From positions 62,001-126,000 of IMG/VR virus record IMGVR_UViG_3300013233_000093: a DNA stretch of 64,000 nt. One strand, written 5' to 3'. This document shows positions 14,017-35,892 of this stretch, piece after piece; within the stretch, counting starts at the first letter, position 1; each line of letters opens with the position of its first letter. A program made the translations under genes and the position numbers. The notes below the pieces were generated by a model that was given only the letters and a program-made list of their open reading frames with translations, searched no databases and was not told where the DNA came from.

Positions 14017-14504
14017 TGAGCGACATAAAGGAAATGGCGGAGGTCTTCACATCACCGCCTGAGATCAACGTGCGTATCTTTGAACGATACGTAGAAGCCA
14101 TATTGGATAGAAGCGACGATCCTGAAATGGAAGCGCTGCGTAAAGAATGGGCAATAGATGTTTGCATCGACTTCAGATTAGCATGCAATGTGGTGAACGA
14201 CAAGGGAGAGGTCCTCTTTAGAGTACCGCCCATCAAAACACCCATCGCTGAATTGTTCGATAAGAACATTACAGGTTTGTTTGAACACATCGACAAGCTA
14301 AACAAGGTAGATCCTAGACTGGCGATGCCGATGATTAATGAGGAGGTGACGTCAGATCTTTACCGTGGTGTAATCACTGTGGAAGATGTAGATTGTTGGA
14401 AGTACATCATTTCCAAATACGGGAAGGATCAGCCCGCGGTACCTACCGGATCTAATCCAATAGAAGAAATGTCATTTACACAAGGTGATGACGATGACTG
14501 GTAA
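14016..14504 (+). CDS. Conserved hypothetical protein
   Basis: TAATG coupling to the previous gene; GEVLFRVPP motif; acidic C-terminus. Confidence 0.7.
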   Translation: MSDIKEMAEVFTSPPEINVRIFERYVEAILDRSDDPEMEALRKEWAIDVCIDFRLACNVVNDKGEVLFRVPPIKTPIAELFDKNITGLFEHIDKLNKVDPRLAMPMINEEVTSDLYRGVITVEDVDCWKYIISKYGKDQPAVPTGSNPIEEMSFTQGDDDDW

Positions 14505-15639
14505 AACCTGGGGAAGTCGTGATACGCTTAACATACTAAGCACATCTGACATACACTTCGCGCACCCACGTGTTCCAACCGCAACCGTGGTGGACTCGTT
14601 AAACCGGTTAATACCGGATAATGAAGAGACCGGCAAGTTAGATTTGATCGTTATCCCGGGCGACATGACAGAACGTGGAATCAGTCTTCATGAGTACGAC
14701 ACGATACTAATAGACCGTTGGATGATACGGCTACTTAGATTGTGTAAGAAATGGAGCATCGTTTTAAGGGTCTCCGAGGGCACCGGGTCGCACGATCGCA
14801 AACAGGCTGCCCGTATCATGCATCTTAATAAGATCTCTGGTATAGGCGCTGATGTGCAGTATTGGGAGACGCTAACCATAGAACACATTGATGTATACGA
14901 CATCGACGTGCTTTATGTACCGGATAACTACAAGGTGGATCCGGAAGATACATGGGTCGACGTGCAGGCCGCGTTGAAAGCCAAAGGACTGGAGAAGGTA
15001 GACTTTGCATTGATGCACGGTTTCTTTGAACATCAAGTACCTTCTATGTCCCACGGCACACCTCACAAGAACGATCGTTACCTTTCTATAGTACGTAAGT
15101 ACATCTTTAACGGACATCACCACACGCCAGTGGTGAAAGACCGAATAATTGTACAGGGATCCCCAGAGAGACTGGGGTTTGGACAAGAGGAACCGAAAGG
15201 ATGTTTCTTAGTGGAGTGCATGTCGCGCACTGATGCTGCGAATGATACCGTTAAGTTTGTGGAGAATAAACTGGCGGTCATCTTTAACACGTACATTGTA
15301 GACGACGATACTACTGAAGCGGCATTGGGGGTTATCTTAGACGCAGCAGGTAGCCTTGCAAAGGGTTCTAACGTTTGGATCAAGATATCCAGAGGCTCTA
15401 AACACATGCCCGCTGTGGAGGTCGCTGCTGCCCGTCACAAGGACATCCGTTGGAAAATCGAACCTGGAGTAACTAAGAAAAAGATAAGCAGAGAAGTAAT
15501 CAACATCACCCCCTCTAAAACCGTCCGTGAGATTACGGGCGAAACGGTGATGGAACTTGTGAAAGAGCGGCTTGTTATAGACGCAGTCAGTGAAGAAGAC
15601 GCAGCATATGCACTTAAACTACTAGGAGGACTTGCATGA
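14485..15639 (+). CDS. sbcD: SbcD/Mre11-like metallophosphoesterase nuclease
   Basis: SDIH, PGD, GTGSHD, MHG, GHHH and GSPERL motifs. Confidence 0.88.
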   Translation: MMTMTGKTWGSRDTLNILSTSDIHFAHPRVPTATVVDSLNRLIPDNEETGKLDLIVIPGDMTERGISLHEYDTILIDRWMIRLLRLCKKWSIVLRVSEGTGSHDRKQAARIMHLNKISGIGADVQYWETLTIEHIDVYDIDVLYVPDNYKVDPEDTWVDVQAALKAKGLEKVDFALMHGFFEHQVPSMSHGTPHKNDRYLSIVRKYIFNGHHHTPVVKDRIIVQGSPERLGFGQEEPKGCFLVECMSRTDAANDTVKFVENKLAVIFNTYIVDDDTTEAALGVILDAAGSLAKGSNVWIKISRGSKHMPAVEVAAARHKDIRWKIEPGVTKKKISREVINITPSKTVREITGETVMELVKERLVIDAVSEEDAAYALKLLGGLA

Positions 15640-29496: not shown

Positions 29497-31053
29497 ATGG
29501 ATAGTAGTATGGTGAGTGAGTTGGAGTATGCTGAGTTGGTGTTGGATGGGGTGCTTAGTGGTCGGGTTATTAAGATCTATGAGGAGTCTGATAGTATAGC
29601 TGGTATGCTTTGCCTAGACAAAGACCGTGTGGAGTGGGTGTCTGGCGACTCCATAGGCGCAGACACCGTAGCTGGCATGCAGTTTATAGGTAGAGCTTTT
29701 AAGGCTGTATGGCGTCTGATAGTCCGTGCAGTGATGGCGGTAGTAAACGGCCTTAAAAGACTCTGGGAGTGGCTTACCGGAGGTAAGGGCAGCACTAATC
29801 CGGATACTCCTGGTAGTGTGTATGAAGAGAAGCCCACTCCTGTGGGAGGAGTCATAGGCAAGGAAATGGCTAAGGAAGACAAGGCTAACGTAGAGACCGC
29901 GCTCGCCGTAGCAGAGCTAGACGAGAAGGGAGTGGATATAGAAAAAGCGGCGGAAGAAGCGGCAAGACAAGACGCCGCCAAAGTTGAACGTCGTAAGGCT
30001 GAAGCTGCCGAGGAGGCCAGACGTCGTAAGGACGGGGCGCGTGCAGCGCGCGATAAACAGGAGGCTGAATCAAAAAGGATCAATGATGAACGTATGGCCA
30101 GGGAAGAAGAAGAGGCCAAAATAGCACTGAAGCGTCATCGCAAGGAAGCACTGGCCGCAGAACTAAAAAGGAAGGAAGAACTGCTGCAACGAGCTAGGAA
30201 ACTCGACGGGCTATCGTTCACTATTGAAATACCTGACACGATGAGAGTATTTAAACAGTCTGATATTGCCAGCATAGAGCGAGACGCCATTATAACGGAA
30301 AATCGCGTCGATTATGAAACCATGCGGTCATACTTAGCTAAGTCTACTGAAGCAATCATTGCAATGGGCGATGCCGGGCTGAAGTATTTGACGTTAGGCG
30401 TAGCCTCGTTGTATCGGGCATATCCACAAGACGGCGAGTTTACCGATAAGACACGCGATAGTATAAACAGTGCCATATCGAATGTAACCGATGGCTACGT
30501 AAAACATGCAGCCAACACACTGCGCGTATTATTGCATGGTCATGAAAAGACATACCGCACCAGCCTTGTGGTTGGCGAACGCATGACCGGAAACATGGGC
30601 GGGGGCGATGCGTATCTGGTAACGGTTAGCGCAACGCCTGTAGATGGACAGCTGTCCGTGACATCATCCCTTGTGCCAGCTAAGACAAGACCTGCGCTTA
30701 AATATGTAATGTTTAATGGCACCGAGCTGTCAAATAAAAATATGGTGGACTCGCATTACGAGACGAGGGTGTACGTCAGAGACTTAAATCAGGCCAGCGA
30801 GGCACAAGCTGAAGCACTCGCGGATGCCATCCGCGAGTTTAACGGTTACGTAAAGAAGTTAGACGGCAAGCCGGGTGCTGAGGTTATCACGGACGTTATT
30901 AAAAATGTGATATCGCTAGGAACCGTGGGTGGTACTGCAATAGGCAATGTCGTAAAGCGCCTGTCGAAGTATCAAGCAGCGACCGCAAACGAAGCTGTGT
31001 TCCGCAAAGACTTGTTTATAAACATATTAGACAACGAACCCATGCCCAAATAA
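29497..31053 (+). CDS. Inner-head paralogue family protein (518 aa)
   Basis: First ~150 aa highly similar to 4926; TVAGMQ followed by an amphipathic helix. Confidence 0.7.
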   Translation: MDSSMVSELEYAELVLDGVLSGRVIKIYEESDSIAGMLCLDKDRVEWVSGDSIGADTVAGMQFIGRAFKAVWRLIVRAVMAVVNGLKRLWEWLTGGKGSTNPDTPGSVYEEKPTPVGGVIGKEMAKEDKANVETALAVAELDEKGVDIEKAAEEAARQDAAKVERRKAEAAEEARRRKDGARAARDKQEAESKRINDERMAREEEEAKIALKRHRKEALAAELKRKEELLQRARKLDGLSFTIEIPDTMRVFKQSDIASIERDAIITENRVDYETMRSYLAKSTEAIIAMGDAGLKYLTLGVASLYRAYPQDGEFTDKTRDSINSAISNVTDGYVKHAANTLRVLLHGHEKTYRTSLVVGERMTGNMGGGDAYLVTVSATPVDGQLSVTSSLVPAKTRPALKYVMFNGTELSNKNMVDSHYETRVYVRDLNQASEAQAEALADAIREFNGYVKKLDGKPGAEVITDVIKNVISLGTVGGTAIGNVVKRLSKYQAATANEAVFRKDLFINILDNEPMPK

Positions 31054-31055
31054 CA

Positions 31056-31097
31056 GCATAAGCCATCACCGACTAACGTCGGTGATGGCATCTATGC
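31056..31097. terminator. GCATA-hairpin-TATGC element between convergent genes
   Basis: gccatcaccgac-taac-gtcggtgatggc. Confidence 0.7.
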
Positions 31098-31568
31098 ATC
31101 TTCTAAGTCATCTGGATCGGTGACCAACTGACGTAACTCATTCACGTACTTCTCATAGCACAAGTCATGCAGTACGAAGTAATCAGCCGGATGCATCTCC
31201 ATTATATCCCTCATGGACATATTAAGATACGTTGGCATATTAGCTCCGATGATCTGCTTGGCGATCTGCTTGGCTACCGAGTGTTTCGGTATCTGTGAGA
31301 AGGCATGGTGTGTCACGCCTGGTATTGGGTTCTTAGGGGAGAACCCTTCATGGACACCCATGAGTATATCTAACGTGTTAGAAGCGCTTACACGCGCTCC
31401 TATGCCGTCCATATACACAGGTTGAGATAAGATGTTATCCACGATCGCTTCCGACTGTTCCTTAGTCGGACGATAACTGGGGCTAAGCTGAGGTATGGTG
31501 CGCTTCTCTAGCGTTTTGCTCTTACTCCCTGGGACGTCTTTCTCGACATATGTTGTTCCCGCCTCCAT
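31092..31568 (-). CDS. T4 gp51-like assembly factor; probably the -1 frameshift extension of the upstream ORF
   Basis: YLNMSMRDIMEMHPADY motif; no clear SD at its ATG; its frame opens just before the slippery site at 31580-31586. Confidence 0.6.
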   Translation of the reverse strand: MEAGTTYVEKDVPGSKSKTLEKRTIPQLSPSYRPTKEQSEAIVDNILSQPVYMDGIGARVSASNTLDILMGVHEGFSPKNPIPGVTHHAFSQIPKHSVAKQIAKQIIGANMPTYLNMSMRDIMEMHPADYFVLHDLCYEKYVNELRQLVTDPDDLEDA

Positions 31569-33127
31569 ACCATTAAGTCTAAAAAATAGTCAACCACGTT
31601 CACGGGAATGATGCCACGCGCCTTGTCGATTCCTTCAGCCTGTGACTCGCCGCACTTAGGACATTCGTAGTTGGTAAAGCCCGTAAAGCTAAACTGCACG
31701 TCCTCGCGATAGTTGTTGATAAGCCCAGTGATCTGAGACTCCATCTCTTCATCAGCACTGAACTGTTCAAGGTACTCGCCAATGGTGTCCACGTCACTTA
31801 CTGTAATCACTTCGTCGTCATCAGGAGACAGTTTAAACTGCACTGATTCAATCCAACAAGCATGTCGTGACAACGTAAGCGCTTTCTGGTATTGCACCAT
31901 GTACTCGTTACGCTTGGTCTCGCGTTCTTCACCGTCCAGGTCTTCACCCATGTTAAGTGAAACATTGACCATGTTCACCACACCGTTTACCCAATGATTG
32001 CCACGAGACTCGTAGACATCCACGTGAGGGATCTTAAGGTACAGTGAGTAATCCACATCACCACCGCTGACAATCACTTTACGCTCTGAACGATTCACAG
32101 ATTCTTGATACGCCAGAATCTCTTCACCGGTATGGACTTCCATCATGAAGTTACGGTTATCCAGTGTAAGGGAGTTACCGTCAATGAAATGCATGCGCCG
32201 GAAGTAGATAAGGCCAGAGACGTCAAACTCACGACCATCCAAACTGGCTTTAAGTTGTTCTTCAGTGCTGTACGTACAAGTAGTGCCTTCATTCTTACAG
32301 CGTTGGATACTCGGATAGCCGCCTGGGTAGATGGATTCCAAACACGCAGTAAAGATAGAGTGAATGTCAGTAGCCAGTAACAAAGACTTAAGTGTCTGCA
32401 GATCTCCCTGCATCCAGCCTTTGATGTTAGTAGACATAGCGTGACTTAAGCAGAAGTCAAGCAGGTCCATAGTGAGCTTCACGTCACCACCCGAGATCAG
32501 ATACCCAGCAGTGTCGTAACCGATGTCCATACGACGCGAGATCAAGATGTTACTGATAGTCAGCATCTCAGTCAGCTTAAAGTTACCAAAGGTGATGGTA
32601 ATGCCTGAGTGTACGCACTGTACCTCGCCCGGACCACCCATGCCAAGACTGGTCTGCAACGCAGTCACTGCCGCAGCGCCTTTAAGATGCGCCTTACCTT
32701 TAGTCGATACGTTTAGACGCTTGATGCCCACGGCACCTTTACTGCAATCCAAACGCTGCTGCCATTCTGCATCTTCGCGATCAAACACAGAGTTGTATTC
32801 GTCGTGACCCCAATGACCGCGCATGGGACGTAACAGGCCTTGACTGTACGCTTCTAACTCAGATTCAAAGGTATCTTGAGTGGCTTCATTCCATGAAGAC
32901 TTCGCATACTCCATGAGTTGTTCTTCGTACTCTTCGCGAGATGCACGAGACATGGGCACGTCTTTTACACGATAACGAACCTTTGCCACTGCATCGGCAG
33001 GAAACGCTGAGTATGTATCACGGATCTTGGTCGTCTTTGGTTTTGTTTCAATGGTCGGGGCGGTGTCCACCTCGACCTTAACAGCCGCAACTGTTTCGTC
33101 TGACGGCACACTTGATTCGCTACTCAT
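31508..33127 (-). CDS. T4 gp26-like baseplate/tail assembly chaperone with C-terminal Zn ribbon
   Basis: YPGGYP…C…C and NYECPKCG motifs; ends near a YF(L/F) slippery site. Confidence 0.6.
   Translation of the reverse strand: MSSESSVPSDETVAAVKVEVDTAPTIETKPKTTKIRDTYSAFPADAVAKVRYRVKDVPMSRASREEYEEQLMEYAKSSWNEATQDTFESELEAYSQGLLRPMRGHWGHDEYNSVFDREDAEWQQRLDCSKGAVGIKRLNVSTKGKAHLKGAAAVTALQTSLGMGGPGEVQCVHSGITITFGNFKLTEMLTISNILISRRMDIGYDTAGYLISGGDVKLTMDLLDFCLSHAMSTNIKGWMQGDLQTLKSLLLATDIHSIFTACLESIYPGGYPSIQRCKNEGTTCTYSTEEQLKASLDGREFDVSGLIYFRRMHFIDGNSLTLDNRNFMMEVHTGEEILAYQESVNRSERKVIVSGGDVDYSLYLKIPHVDVYESRGNHWVNGVVNMVNVSLNMGEDLDGEERETKRNEYMVQYQKALTLSRHACWIESVQFKLSPDDDEVITVSDVDTIGEYLEQFSADEEMESQITGLINNYREDVQFSFTGFTNYECPKCGESQAEGIDKARGIIPVNVVDYFLDLMVWRREQHMSRKTSQGVRAKR
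31580..31586 (-). promoter_or_regulatory. Candidate -1 programmed frameshift heptamer U_UUU_UUA
   Basis: In frame (TAT TTT TTA, codons 514-516); the -1 frame reads FFRLNG-MEAGTT… into ORF 31092..31568. Confidence 0.65.
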
Positions 33128-33617
33128 TTACAATCTCCTCGTCCGATAATAATTCCACGTCGTCATCGACAACCGGTGTTTCAGCATCACCTGCCTTGCT
33201 TTCTACACGGTCAATCACTACTGCCAGTTCACCCAAGGCACCTACTGCATCGTGCATGACCATTTCGTGCACGTCGGAAATAACGGTGTGCAAGTTTAAG
33301 AACGTGCTCACTTCATGATCCCGTACAGGACCGCGTTTGGCAGGCAACTCTAATTCCGCAATGGCGGTCAGACGTTGGCGTCCGTCAGACAACGCCAGCG
33401 CACCGCTGTGCACCAGCGACTTCTCAGCATCGGTCAACTCACCGGACAATGGCATCGTGGTGTACATGCGGAAACCATTGGCGGTTTCTGTGATCAAGTT
33501 TTCGATGGTACGGATCAGTTGGTTCAGGTCACGCCAAAGCATTCTTTTGTGTTGCTCCTTAGGTTTAATGATCTTTTTCTTACGTTTACAAGTGCGTTTA
33601 TTTTTTAACTTTTTCAT
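33120..33617 (-). CDS. Hypothetical protein (basic N-terminus, helical)
   Basis: AGGA SD; overlaps the next start by 8 nt. Confidence 0.7.
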   Translation of the reverse strand: MKKLKNKRTCKRKKKIIKPKEQHKRMLWRDLNQLIRTIENLITETANGFRMYTTMPLSGELTDAEKSLVHSGALALSDGRQRLTAIAELELPAKRGPVRDHEVSTFLNLHTVISDVHEMVMHDAVGALGELAVVIDRVESKAGDAETPVVDDDVELLSDEEIVNE

Positions 33618-33707: not shown

Positions 33708-34529
33708 ATGAACGAACTACCAGAGGTATTGTCGTATTCTACATGGGTATTACCCGTCCCAGTTGTAGAAACCATTGTTAAGATCGAAGCCCTATTCGGG
33801 TTCCTAGATTACACAGGACATCTGACCGAACTGGAAGACACTATGTCTTCATCGGATCTTCCTACGTCTGCATTGTCGCACGACATTAGAGACGCGTATG
33901 CAAAGCACATCCACCTGGTCGCCAAACAGTTTGGTGTGTATCTGACCGATGCCGTGTCGTTAGCAAAGGCGCTGTCCATAGTCACGGCGTTACACGACTT
34001 AGGAAACCCAGAGGTTACAATGGGGTTAGAGGTAGAGATAGATGATCACGATGTCGTGTTCACACTGATGAACTATCTCATTGCTGTATCTGATCTGACT
34101 ACTTCTGATCTGATTGATGCGTTTGAGGAGATCGAGCCTGCATTGGTGGAACGCATAAAAGAATCCACAGATGAAGAGGCGGAAGTAGACGAGATGCATG
34201 ACGTTGCGGTAAACCGATATCGTAAGTACATGTCCACCGTCACCCGCGGTCATGGTTTCGAGTCCATCAAGAACCTTAAAACGTTTCCGTACACTTTAGA
34301 GTACGCCTTGCTAGGACTGAATAAGTCCTACGTAAACACACTATCTCCTGAAGAGTTGACTACTGAGTTGGCAGGACTTATCTTAGGTTCAACACTTAAG
34401 CCGAAAGACTTGATTGTGGATAGCTCTGATTTACTAATGGATTATCTAGGCGTGGTAAAATACGTAACAGTGCAATCCAATCTACGTGCCATCCTAACGC
34501 CGTATACGGAGGAAATATTAAGTGAATAA
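33708..34529 (+). CDS. Conserved hypothetical protein (phiKZ gp79-like position)
   Basis: Acidic helical ORF coupled to the vRNAP gene. Confidence 0.7.
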   Translation: MNELPEVLSYSTWVLPVPVVETIVKIEALFGFLDYTGHLTELEDTMSSSDLPTSALSHDIRDAYAKHIHLVAKQFGVYLTDAVSLAKALSIVTALHDLGNPEVTMGLEVEIDDHDVVFTLMNYLIAVSDLTTSDLIDAFEEIEPALVERIKESTDEEAEVDEMHDVAVNRYRKYMSTVTRGHGFESIKNLKTFPYTLEYALLGLNKSYVNTLSPEELTTELAGLILGSTLKPKDLIVDSSDLLMDYLGVVKYVTVQSNLRAILTPYTEEILSE

Positions 34530-35892
34530 ATACGAGATGTTTGTCGCAGCGTACAAGTCCAAACTCGTCTATAACCGGACATGGCTGCTGCGTGCGTTTA
34601 CAGTGCCGCATCCCACCGATAACGAGGACTTAAAGGATTTCCTATCACTGAGCATAGAAGATCGCGTAAAGGCCTCTACGGGCAGTCACGGCAGCGACGA
34701 TGCATTCTACTTCTCAGACATATACTTGCGTGCCCGCTACGACGAGTTCAAGCCCGGGTATATGTACACCGATCAATCCGGCACGGTAATGTCTTTGACG
34801 CCGTCTATGGAGTTTACGGCAGTCACGGGACTGACTGCAAACGAACCTGTATACACAGTCACAGAACCGGTCAATGTAAAGGCAGATGACATATTGATGG
34901 TCAAGGAGGACACAAAGTCATATTACAGTACGTTAGTCACCAATCTACTGTTGTTTGAATTTGCCTTCGGTGATAAGTTCCCGTACTGGAATAAAGCGTT
35001 TGACTCTCGGTCACTGGACTCTGCTATCGCAGCAGCGCTAAAGGACGGAACTATCGATGTGCCGGAACGACTTAAACATTCGGTAGGCGTGGGAATGTTG
35101 TACATATTCACCGTGGTGGCTGTGCCGTCGGCTTCGCCTAAGTCTGCGACATCCAACCCCGAGTCACGGGTGCTGCGTGCTAAGCTACTCGAGAAGTATA
35201 AGGACGAGTTAGACAATCCGGTGATCCAGTCTAAGATCGAGGCGGAACTCATTAAGTTGGACAGGGAGTGGCTTAAAGGTGATGATTCGGAAGGCTTTCA
35301 AACTAAGAAAATGTTTAACGTTACCCGTAAACGCATGTTCGGGATCTTTGGTGGTGAACCGACTTTGGAAAACCCGGGTAAATATGATTTGGCCGTGCCG
35401 TCGCTTGAAGAAGGGGTGGAGATCAAAGATCTACCTATGGCGGTAAACTCCCTGCGCATGGGTTCGTATAACCGTGGTGCAGCGACTGCACTGGGTGGTA
35501 CTGATGCTAAGTTCGGTGGTAGGATGTACCAGAACACGTCATTGATAGAAGAAGATTGTGGATCAGTTATCGGATTGCCCACGGTAGTGACGTCCTTTAA
35601 TAAGTCTAAACTAACGGGCAGGTACGTGGTCGTTAAAGGCAAAACAAAGAAGATTGGAGATACTTCTAAACTTGTAGGCAACCACGTTATGTTACGCGCA
35701 CCCGCACGCTGTCGCGCAGCTGACGGCAACTACTGTCCCACATGCATGGGCGATTCCGTGGTGGATTCTAAGATCGGTCCAGGGCCACAGGCGTTTTCTG
35801 TAGGTAATAACTTCCTGCAAATCTCACTGTCTCTGTTTCACGGCAGAGCCATGGAGTCTGCTCGATATAAGTACAAAGAGGCGATCCAGTGA
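34522..35892 (+). CDS. rpoC: Virion RNA polymerase beta' subunit, middle part (phiKZ gp80-like)
   Basis: SLEEG, RMGSYNRGAATALGG (bridge helix), EEDCGS and LRAPARC…CPTCMG motifs. Confidence 0.88.
   Translation: MNKYEMFVAAYKSKLVYNRTWLLRAFTVPHPTDNEDLKDFLSLSIEDRVKASTGSHGSDDAFYFSDIYLRARYDEFKPGYMYTDQSGTVMSLTPSMEFTAVTGLTANEPVYTVTEPVNVKADDILMVKEDTKSYYSTLVTNLLLFEFAFGDKFPYWNKAFDSRSLDSAIAAALKDGTIDVPERLKHSVGVGMLYIFTVVAVPSASPKSATSNPESRVLRAKLLEKYKDELDNPVIQSKIEAELIKLDREWLKGDDSEGFQTKKMFNVTRKRMFGIFGGEPTLENPGKYDLAVPSLEEGVEIKDLPMAVNSLRMGSYNRGAATALGGTDAKFGGRMYQNTSLIEEDCGSVIGLPTVVTSFNKSKLTGRYVVVKGKTKKIGDTSKLVGNHVMLRAPARCRAADGNYCPTCMGDSVVDSKIGPGPQAFSVGNNFLQISLSLFHGRAMESARYKYKEAIQ

Follow-up and report, generated by a model that had tools for sequence, protein, structure and literature searches.

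Organization of the locus

The window analysed here is a 64-kb stretch of viral DNA (64,000 nucleotides of IMG/VR record IMGVR_UViG_3300013233_000093). On its minus strand, a long ORF of 539 aa overlaps by 61 nt with a downstream ORF of 158 aa, which lies in the -1 frame relative to it. The features of this locus are as follows.

33135..33140 (-): Shine-Dalgarno sequence GAGGAG, 7 nt upstream of the ATG of the 539-aa gene
31508..33127 (-): zero-frame gene of 539 aa, homolog of phiKZ gp77, 201phi2-1 gp136, PhiPA3 gp074 and Goslar gp081
31590..31592 (-): TGA that closes the -1 frame one codon before the heptamer
31580..31586 (-): slippery heptamer T_TTT_TTA, in phase with the 539-aa ORF (zero-frame codons TAT TTT TTA at 31588-31580, giving Y514 F515 L516)
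31508..31579 (-): zero-frame tail after the slip site, 23 codons plus TAG, dual-coding with the start of the extension
31092..31580 (-): -1 frame extension, 162 codons plus TAG
31092..31568 (-): the 158-aa ORF as conventionally called from ATG 31568, of which the source record called only 106 aa
31062..31089 (-): perfect 12-bp inverted repeat with a 4-nt loop, just after the TAG and between convergent genes

The -1 frame reads TGA (31592-31590), CTA, TTT, TTT, AGA and continues as R-L-N-G-M-E-A-G-T-T. A fusion would thus comprise 516 + 162 = 678 aa, in agreement with the initial annotation, which had proposed a -1 frameshift at this heptamer. The 539-aa ORF and most long ORFs in the window are preceded by a Shine-Dalgarno sequence, whereas ATG 31568 has none. 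The inverted repeat is probably the end of the transcription unit, although a terminator scan did not report it because no strict T-tract follows.

The 539-aa protein matches phrog_4585 at E 1.9e-58 over residues 58-529, and tblastn with this protein found 196 phage records. The neighbour at 34522-35892 matches phrog_2962, RNA polymerase beta subunit, and gene order is the same as in phiKZ-type records. A direct PHROG scan of the window's copy of the extension was negative, as was tblastn of the 158-aa ORF against phages, but phmmer found four metagenomic relatives in the same arrangement. The extension aligns with the -1 extensions of 28 other loci, 23 of 28 members match phrog_12109, and profile-profile comparison (hhalign) of the window's group against the phiKZ-type group gave 96.9% probability at E 1.4e-10, which indicates one protein family across all groups. 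A nucleotide search of the phage collection gave no match, word-index protein searches gave only self hits, scans of viral contigs with single proteins and a metagenome scan found nothing, and a scan with the close-group alignment gave 3 loci, of which 1 was new. Hence, alignments remained shallow and structural models poor.

Conservation of the slip site and the -1 frame

Within the window alone, the evidence for a frameshift is weak. A T6 run is not unusual there, with 28 matches in 64 kb against 37.6 expected. Only two places in the window, on both strands, combine an ORF of at least 100 codons, an in-phase X_XXY_YYZ in its last 60 codons and a -1 frame reaching at least 50 codons past the stop, and the second of these (A_AAC_CCC at 15180) lies antisense to a 384-aa ORF and is spurious. 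The real significance comes from comparison with relatives.

In all 29 related loci examined, which include 22 lineages below 45% identity, the heptamer position and the -1 frame relationship are conserved despite 15-36% protein identity, with T_TTT_TTN in 25 loci and N_TTT_TTY in the 4 loci that lack the first T of the heptamer. The initial annotation had named loss of this conservation as grounds for rejecting its proposal. The first Phe codon is TTT in 29 of 29, although TTT is only 38% of Phe codons elsewhere in the same genes, and in Ralstonia phage RSL2 it is 0 of 18. The preceding codon ends in T in 25 of 29, while its amino acid is Y, F, V, T, L, G, I or A. With one representative for each of the 22 lineages, TTT occurs in 22 of 22 (joint P about 2e-12) and NNT in 19 of 22 (P about 3e-9); the loci are not fully independent, and these P values are therefore approximate. 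F515 and F516 are among the very few invariant or near-invariant columns of a protein family with only 24% mean column identity, so part of the T-run is explained by coding. However, the heptamer is also the peak of information content of the region at the nucleotide level, and codon choice at the site is not explained by amino-acid conservation.

In every locus, the -1 frame is closed 1-63 codons upstream of the site and then stays open for 149-175 codons after it, whereas the zero-frame tail in relatives is 8-44 codons. The length of the extension is conserved when measured from the slip site, but the first ATG wanders from -28 to +139 codons, and lies at +85 in phiKZ-type KTN4, +87 in AgentSmith and +77 in PhiEaH1. 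Moreover, residues just after the site are conserved where no start codon exists: G4, G8 and T9 are invariant in the window's group, and one locus, L015, has CTT where the window has ATG. Between the zero-frame stop and the first -1 ATG, substitutions in close pairs concentrate on codon position 3 of the -1 frame, with counts of 39, 26 and 65 for positions 1, 2 and 3 summed over four pairs, as for coding sequence.

Ribosomal frameshifting and its alternatives

We suggest that the 539-aa gene and the 158-aa ORF are probably one recoded gene. According to this model, most ribosomes finish the zero frame and make the 539-aa protein, and a fraction slip back one nucleotide while tRNA-Phe (P site, UUU) and tRNA-Leu/Phe (A site, UUA) sit on U_UUU_UUA, then continue in the -1 frame for 162 codons and make a 678-aa protein with the same first 516 residues plus an extra C-terminal domain. 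The arrangement is ancestral to the phiKZ gp77 family and is found in Chimalliviridae and in related jumbo phages as distant as a Bacillus phage. No fusion protein has been observed; its synthesis, the ribosomal nature of the slip and a fixed low efficiency that sets a ratio of the two forms are all inferred. U_UUU_UUA is the HIV-1 shift site and is known to shift in E. coli, though less than A_AAA_AAG (PMC5009743). HIV-1 gag-pol and E. coli dnaX share the tandem-slippage heptamer type, but have defined stimulators, namely a downstream stem-loop and, for dnaX, also an upstream SD-like element. No conserved downstream hairpin or upstream SD-like stimulator was found here, where folding of the 70 nt downstream, without a search for pseudoknots, gave a mean z of -0.66 over 29 loci and +0.53 for the window itself. 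Efficiency may therefore be low.

The main rival is transcriptional slippage, in which the phage or host RNA polymerase adds one U in the T-run and a fraction of mRNAs encode the fusion in a single frame, with the same protein outcome. Runs reach T7-T8 in many relatives, selection for a preceding NNT codon also lengthens the run, UUUUUUU is noted as prone to transcriptional slippage (PMC4066793), and these phages probably use unusual multisubunit RNA polymerases of unknown slippage behaviour. However, the window, pir03, L012 (another of the loci) and BONAISHI have only T6, and Noxifer and PS119XW have T5, which is likely shorter than the runs usually needed for efficient slippage by multisubunit polymerases. 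The run is never extended on its 3′ side, as the next base is A, C or G in all 29 loci, and what is conserved is the tandem-slippage pattern N_TTT_TTN rather than the run length. We consider this mechanism unlikely, but not excluded.

Independent translation of two ordinary genes, with the T-run only encoding a conserved Phe-Phe, is less likely still. An ATG lies 4 codons after the site in the window and an ATG, GTG or TTG lies at a similar place in its nearest relatives, so some independent initiation cannot be excluded there, and all GenBank records inspected annotate separate genes. Nevertheless, no start codon is conserved in the -1 frame, and many loci have none for 50-139 codons although the frame stays open and evolves as coding. 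The codon choice at the site, the lack of a Shine-Dalgarno sequence before ATG 31568 and the constant length of the extension from the slip site also argue against this reading. An artefact, either a one-base error in an error-prone homopolymer of a metagenome assembly or a recent frameshift mutation that split one long gene, is very improbable, because the same -1 relationship holds in 29 independently sequenced loci, including isolate genomes from many laboratories, and none of them has the two parts in one frame. In addition, the zero-frame tail after the site is itself conserved and is matched by the phrog_4585 profile.

Possible function and relation to known systems

The function of the two products is less certain. 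A non-virion role is suggested by the 201phi2-1 record, in which gp135 and gp136 lack the 'identified using mass spectrometry' note carried by their neighbours gp138 and gp139, and by the Goslar virion cryo-EM paper, which never mentions gp81 or gp82. We infer that the pair acts as a non-virion assembly factor, possibly for the baseplate hub or tail, in which the shared body binds one partner and the extension, present in a minority of molecules, binds another.

The initial annotation had compared the pair with lambda G/GT-type tail chaperones, and this comparison holds as an analogy of mechanism but not as membership. In lambda gpG/gpGT and the conserved -1 frameshift of tail assembly chaperone genes in tailed phages (Levin 1993; Xu, Hendrix and Duda 2004; reviewed in PMC5009743), a -1 slip on a heptamer near the 3′ end of a morphogenesis-type gene gives, as is inferred here, a major short product and a minor C-terminally extended one with a shared N-terminal body, neither product appears to be a virion component, and the frame relationship is conserved while sequences diverge almost beyond recognition. 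However, the upstream protein here is 539 aa rather than about 100-150 aa, the heptamer is U_UUU_UUN and not G_GGA_AAG, the next gene downstream (29497..31053, plus strand) is convergent rather than a same-strand gene, and the other neighbours include a virion RNA polymerase beta-subunit gene. No Pfam or PHROG tail-chaperone family matched either part in any member, and only weak structural rows named tail chaperones (Phage_TAC_7 at TM 0.51 in the ESM Atlas; Foldseek E 0.15-0.25).

The labels 'gp26-like' and 'gp51-like' in the initial annotation are only partly supported. In T4, gp26 and gp51 are paralogs listed as hub assembly chaperones (PMC3004832), of which gp26 is the PF12322 (T4_baseplate) domain alone and gp51 is the same domain plus a C-terminal domain (PF28602, Gp51_C). 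The short and long products here would have the same relationship, although the T4 genes are separate and divergently transcribed with no frameshift. Structural leads point to PF12322 for the body (an ESM Atlas cluster that is 99% PF12322, TM 0.65 over 253 residues; Foldseek 'Baseplate hub assembly protein, T4-like' at probability 0.94, E 0.014, from a model with pLDDT 45) and to Gp51_C for the extension (TM 0.59 over 69 residues, from a model with pLDDT 0.50), but the models behind these hits have low confidence. Sequence profiles did not confirm the link. The PF12322 HMM matched none of 26 family members, and Pfam found nothing for any member of either family. Comparisons by hhalign with T4 gp26 and gp51, as single sequences and as an 8-sequence gp51 profile, were negative, with 17% against gp26 and 15% against the gp51 family for the body, the latter with only a CPxC motif aligned, and 0.2% against the gp51 family for the extension. 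PDB sequence-profile searches and a wide VIA-align search gave nothing meaningful, AlphaFold models were poor, and a BFVD Foldseek search with the extension found only the phage family itself. It is a speculative and rather doubtful possibility that one recoded gene in Chimalliviridae does the job of two paralogous genes in T4, with the zero-frame product corresponding to gp26 and the frameshift product reproducing the architecture of gp51. On this reading, gp26/gp51-type hub assembly factors would be the large-myovirus counterpart of the G/GT chaperone pair, with the ratio of the two forms set by frameshifting in one lineage and by separate genes in the other.

None of the 24 GenBank records inspected annotates a frameshift, and no paper found describes one in phiKZ-like phages; 'gp77' in the Goslar, PCH45 and PhiPA3 papers refers to other genes, numbered in those phages' own schemes. 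If the frameshift is real, about 200 sequenced jumbo-phage genomes mis-annotate this locus, including the model phages phiKZ, PhiPA3, 201phi2-1, Goslar and the SPN3US group, with the extension either cut down to a short ORF from the first ATG or left partly as an intergenic gap. The site would then be a natural U_UUU_UUN shift site with no evident stimulator, working in hosts from Pseudomonas to Bacillus, which makes it useful for recoding studies. Moreover, the finding would add a family-wide, ancient recoding event to a group of phages in which we found none described, and give an experimental handle on a conserved core gene of unknown function.

Organization of the locus and identity of the genes

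The initial annotation noted a 539-aa ORF on the minus strand with an in-phase heptamer and an overlapping 158-aa ORF in its -1 frame, with a predicted fusion of about 678 aa, and every element of this observation was correct. The relevant features are as follows.

31508-33127, minus strand: 539-aa ORF (P0001), with GAGGAG 7 nt before its ATG
31092-31568, minus strand: 158-aa ORF (P0002), overlapping P0001 by 61 nt and in its -1 frame
31588-31580, minus strand: zero-frame codons TAT TTT TTA
31586-31580, minus strand: heptamer T_TTT_TTA, in the X_XXY_YYZ phase
31592-31590, minus strand: TGA in the -1 frame, one codon before the heptamer
31094-31092, minus strand: TAG ending the -1 frame, which is open for 162 codons after the heptamer
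31062-31089: perfect 12-bp inverted repeat with a 4-nt loop, following the TAG and preceding the convergent gene at 29497-31053 on the plus strand

A tandem slip would give a product of 516 + 162 = 678 aa. The ATG at 31568 has no Shine-Dalgarno sequence, although most long ORFs in the window have one. The gene call of the source record for this ORF is only 106 aa, starting at the internal Met 53, probably because the 61-nt overlap exceeds the limit of a gene caller. The inverted repeat is likely a bidirectional terminator, but was not reported by the consensus scan because it lacks a strict T-tract.

In the window alone, the site is not more than expected by chance, as T6 occurs 28 times in 64 kb against 37.6 expected. 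However, the whole geometry is rare, and only two places in the window combine an ORF of at least 100 codons, an in-phase heptamer in its last 60 codons and a -1 frame running at least 50 codons past the stop. The other place (15117-15434, minus strand, with A_AAC_CCC at 15180 and a 100-codon -1 ORF) lies antisense to a 384-aa plus-strand ORF (14485-15639) and is most likely spurious. The case has to rest on relatives.

The window is part of a 222,906-bp IMG/VR virus with terminal repeats, from a microbial-mat metagenome. P0001 matched phrog_4585 at E 1.9e-58, and tblastn showed homologs at 20-29% identity in 196 phage records of Pseudomonas, Erwinia, Salmonella, Serratia, Ralstonia, Vibrio and other hosts. 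These homologs are identified in GenBank notes as phiKZ gp77, 201phi2-1 gp136, PhiPA3 gp074 and EL gp47, and by position the Goslar homolog is gp081. Synteny is also kept, with an RNA polymerase beta subunit at 34522-35892 as in the phiKZ-type records. In contrast, P0002 had no hit in PHROGs, Pfam or the phage collection, but an exhaustive phmmer search found four metagenomic relatives at 23-43% identity, and each of these sits directly behind a gp77 homolog, overlapping it or separated from it by a few bases.

Conservation of the site in relatives

We collected 29 loci, comprising the window, 5 distinct metagenomic relatives and 23 named phages, with T4 as an outside reference, and located the gp77 homolog and the site in each by script. 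In all 29 loci, the sequence at the conserved Phe-Phe, 8-44 codons before the zero-frame stop, was TTT_TTN. The canonical T_TTT_TTN heptamer was present in 25 of 29, and the exceptions were PhiPA3 and FLC9 (G_TTT_TTT), Noxifer (G_TTT_TTC) and PS119XW (A_TTT_TTC). The -1 frame was closed 1-63 codons before the site and open for 149-175 codons downstream of it. In Erwinia phage PhiEaH1 (NC_023610; locus L026, positions 3-1400), the gp77 homolog is not annotated and is cut by the arbitrary start of the linear record, but its slip site and 158-codon extension are intact.

The first Phe codon was TTT in 29 of 29 loci, although TTT makes up only 38% of the other Phe codons in the same genes, and in RSL2 it is 0 of 18. 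Moreover, the codon in front ends in T in 25 of 29, even though it encodes Y, F, V, T, L, G, I or A. With one representative for each of 22 lineages below 45% identity, TTT was found in 22 of 22 (joint P about 2e-12) and NNT in 19 of 22 (P about 3e-9), where these P values treat the lineages as independent and are approximate. F515 and F516 are among the few invariant or near-invariant columns in a family whose mean column identity is 24%, and the heptamer is the nucleotide-conservation peak of the region. In addition, the 5 bases after the T-run are often ACCCT or ATCCT, giving Thr-Leu in the zero frame and Tyr-Pro in the -1 frame, and this short dual-coding stretch is conserved across distant lineages, although the window itself has GACTT (31575-31579).

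Ribosomal slippage, independent initiation and transcriptional slippage

The -1 ORF could in principle be translated from its own start codon, but the comparative data are against this. The first ATG in this ORF lies anywhere from 28 codons before to 139 codons after the site (KTN4 +85, AgentSmith +87, SNUABM_54 +83 and PhiEaH1 +77). Annotators therefore left 'intergenic' gaps of about 200 nt after the gp77 homologs, or called short ORFs such as the 80 aa in KTN4. The gaps in KTN4/phiKZ (locus L004, 3680-3897), AgentSmith (L019, 2836-3050) and pEa_SNUABM_54 (L023, 2773-2966) are fully open in the -1 frame and are explained by the extension, of which the annotated downstream ORFs are truncated versions. 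Peptides translated from the site onward align over their whole length, 23 of 28 match phrog_12109, and hhalign showed that the window's group is homologous to the phiKZ-type group (96.9%, E 1.4e-10). In the window's group, G4, G8 and T9 of the extension are invariant, and L015, a locus compared with the window here, has CTT where the window has its ATG. Furthermore, in the stretch beyond the zero-frame stop and before any -1 ATG, differences between close pairs fall mainly on codon position 3 of the -1 frame, with counts of 39, 26 and 65 for positions 1, 2 and 3 summed over four pairs, which is the signature of translated sequence.

The simplest reading is tandem -1 ribosomal slippage on U_UUU_UUN. 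U_UUU_UUA is the HIV-1 site and shifts in E. coli, though less than A_AAA_AAG (PMC5009743). No conserved downstream hairpin was found by folding, with a mean z of -0.66 over 29 loci and +0.53 for the window, and no upstream SD-like element was evident. The efficiency may therefore be low, as in many phage tail-chaperone sites. Transcriptional slippage is the main rival and cannot be excluded without RNA data for this phage, but it is less likely, because the window and several relatives have only T6 or T5 and the run is never extended on its 3' side. Taken together, comparative evidence strongly supports a conserved recoding site, so that recoding of some kind is very likely and ribosomal -1 frameshifting is probable, although the fusion protein itself is inferred.

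Possible functions and novelty of the gene pair

The gene pair does not appear to encode virion proteins. 201phi2-1 gp135 and gp136 lack the mass-spectrometry note that gp138 and gp139 carry, and the Goslar virion cryo-EM paper, which models 28 proteins, never mentions gp81 or gp82. Some annotators call homologs 'baseplate hub (assembly) protein'. The gp26/gp51 labels and the G/GT comparison of the initial annotation are analogies supported only by weak structural hits. For P0001, the ESM Atlas links residues 149-522 to a cluster that is 99% PF12322 T4_baseplate, with TM 0.65 over 253 residues. For the extension, the top Atlas row is PF28602 Gp51_C with TM 0.59 over 69 residues, followed by a Phage_TAC_7 row at TM 0.51, both from a low-confidence model. 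Our own AlphaFold models were poor, at pLDDT 45 and 58. With these models, Foldseek on BFVD found the family itself, then a 'Baseplate hub assembly protein, T4-like' row (probability 0.94, E 0.014) and several weak 'tail assembly chaperone' rows, whereas the extension hit only its own family. Searches of Pfam and PDB and hhalign against T4 gp26 and gp51 were all negative.

In P0001, four cysteines at residues 277, 284, 489 and 492 (window about 31652-32299; C-x6-C and C-P-x-C) are conserved in most family members, suggesting a zinc-binding site just upstream of the slip site, although RSL2 lacks the second pair. T4 gp51 also has a CPKC motif, but at a non-equivalent position.

T4 gp26 and gp51 (locus L034, 7803-9229) both match PF12322 over nearly their full length (E 9e-64 and 4e-52), and close gp51 homologs carry PF12322 plus PF28602. 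In T4, the 'body' and 'body plus C-terminal domain' forms are therefore two paralogous genes, adjacent but divergently transcribed, and both are listed as hub assembly chaperones (PMC3004832). The short and long products proposed here would mirror that relationship, which we treat as an attractive but unproven lead.

None of the 24 GenBank records inspected annotates a joined CDS at this locus, and no description of frameshifting in phiKZ-like, jumbo or Chimalliviridae phages was found in the literature searched, nor does the large recoding review mention phiKZ or jumbo phages in the text searched. The mechanism is of a known kind, but the gene family and the phage family are new for it.
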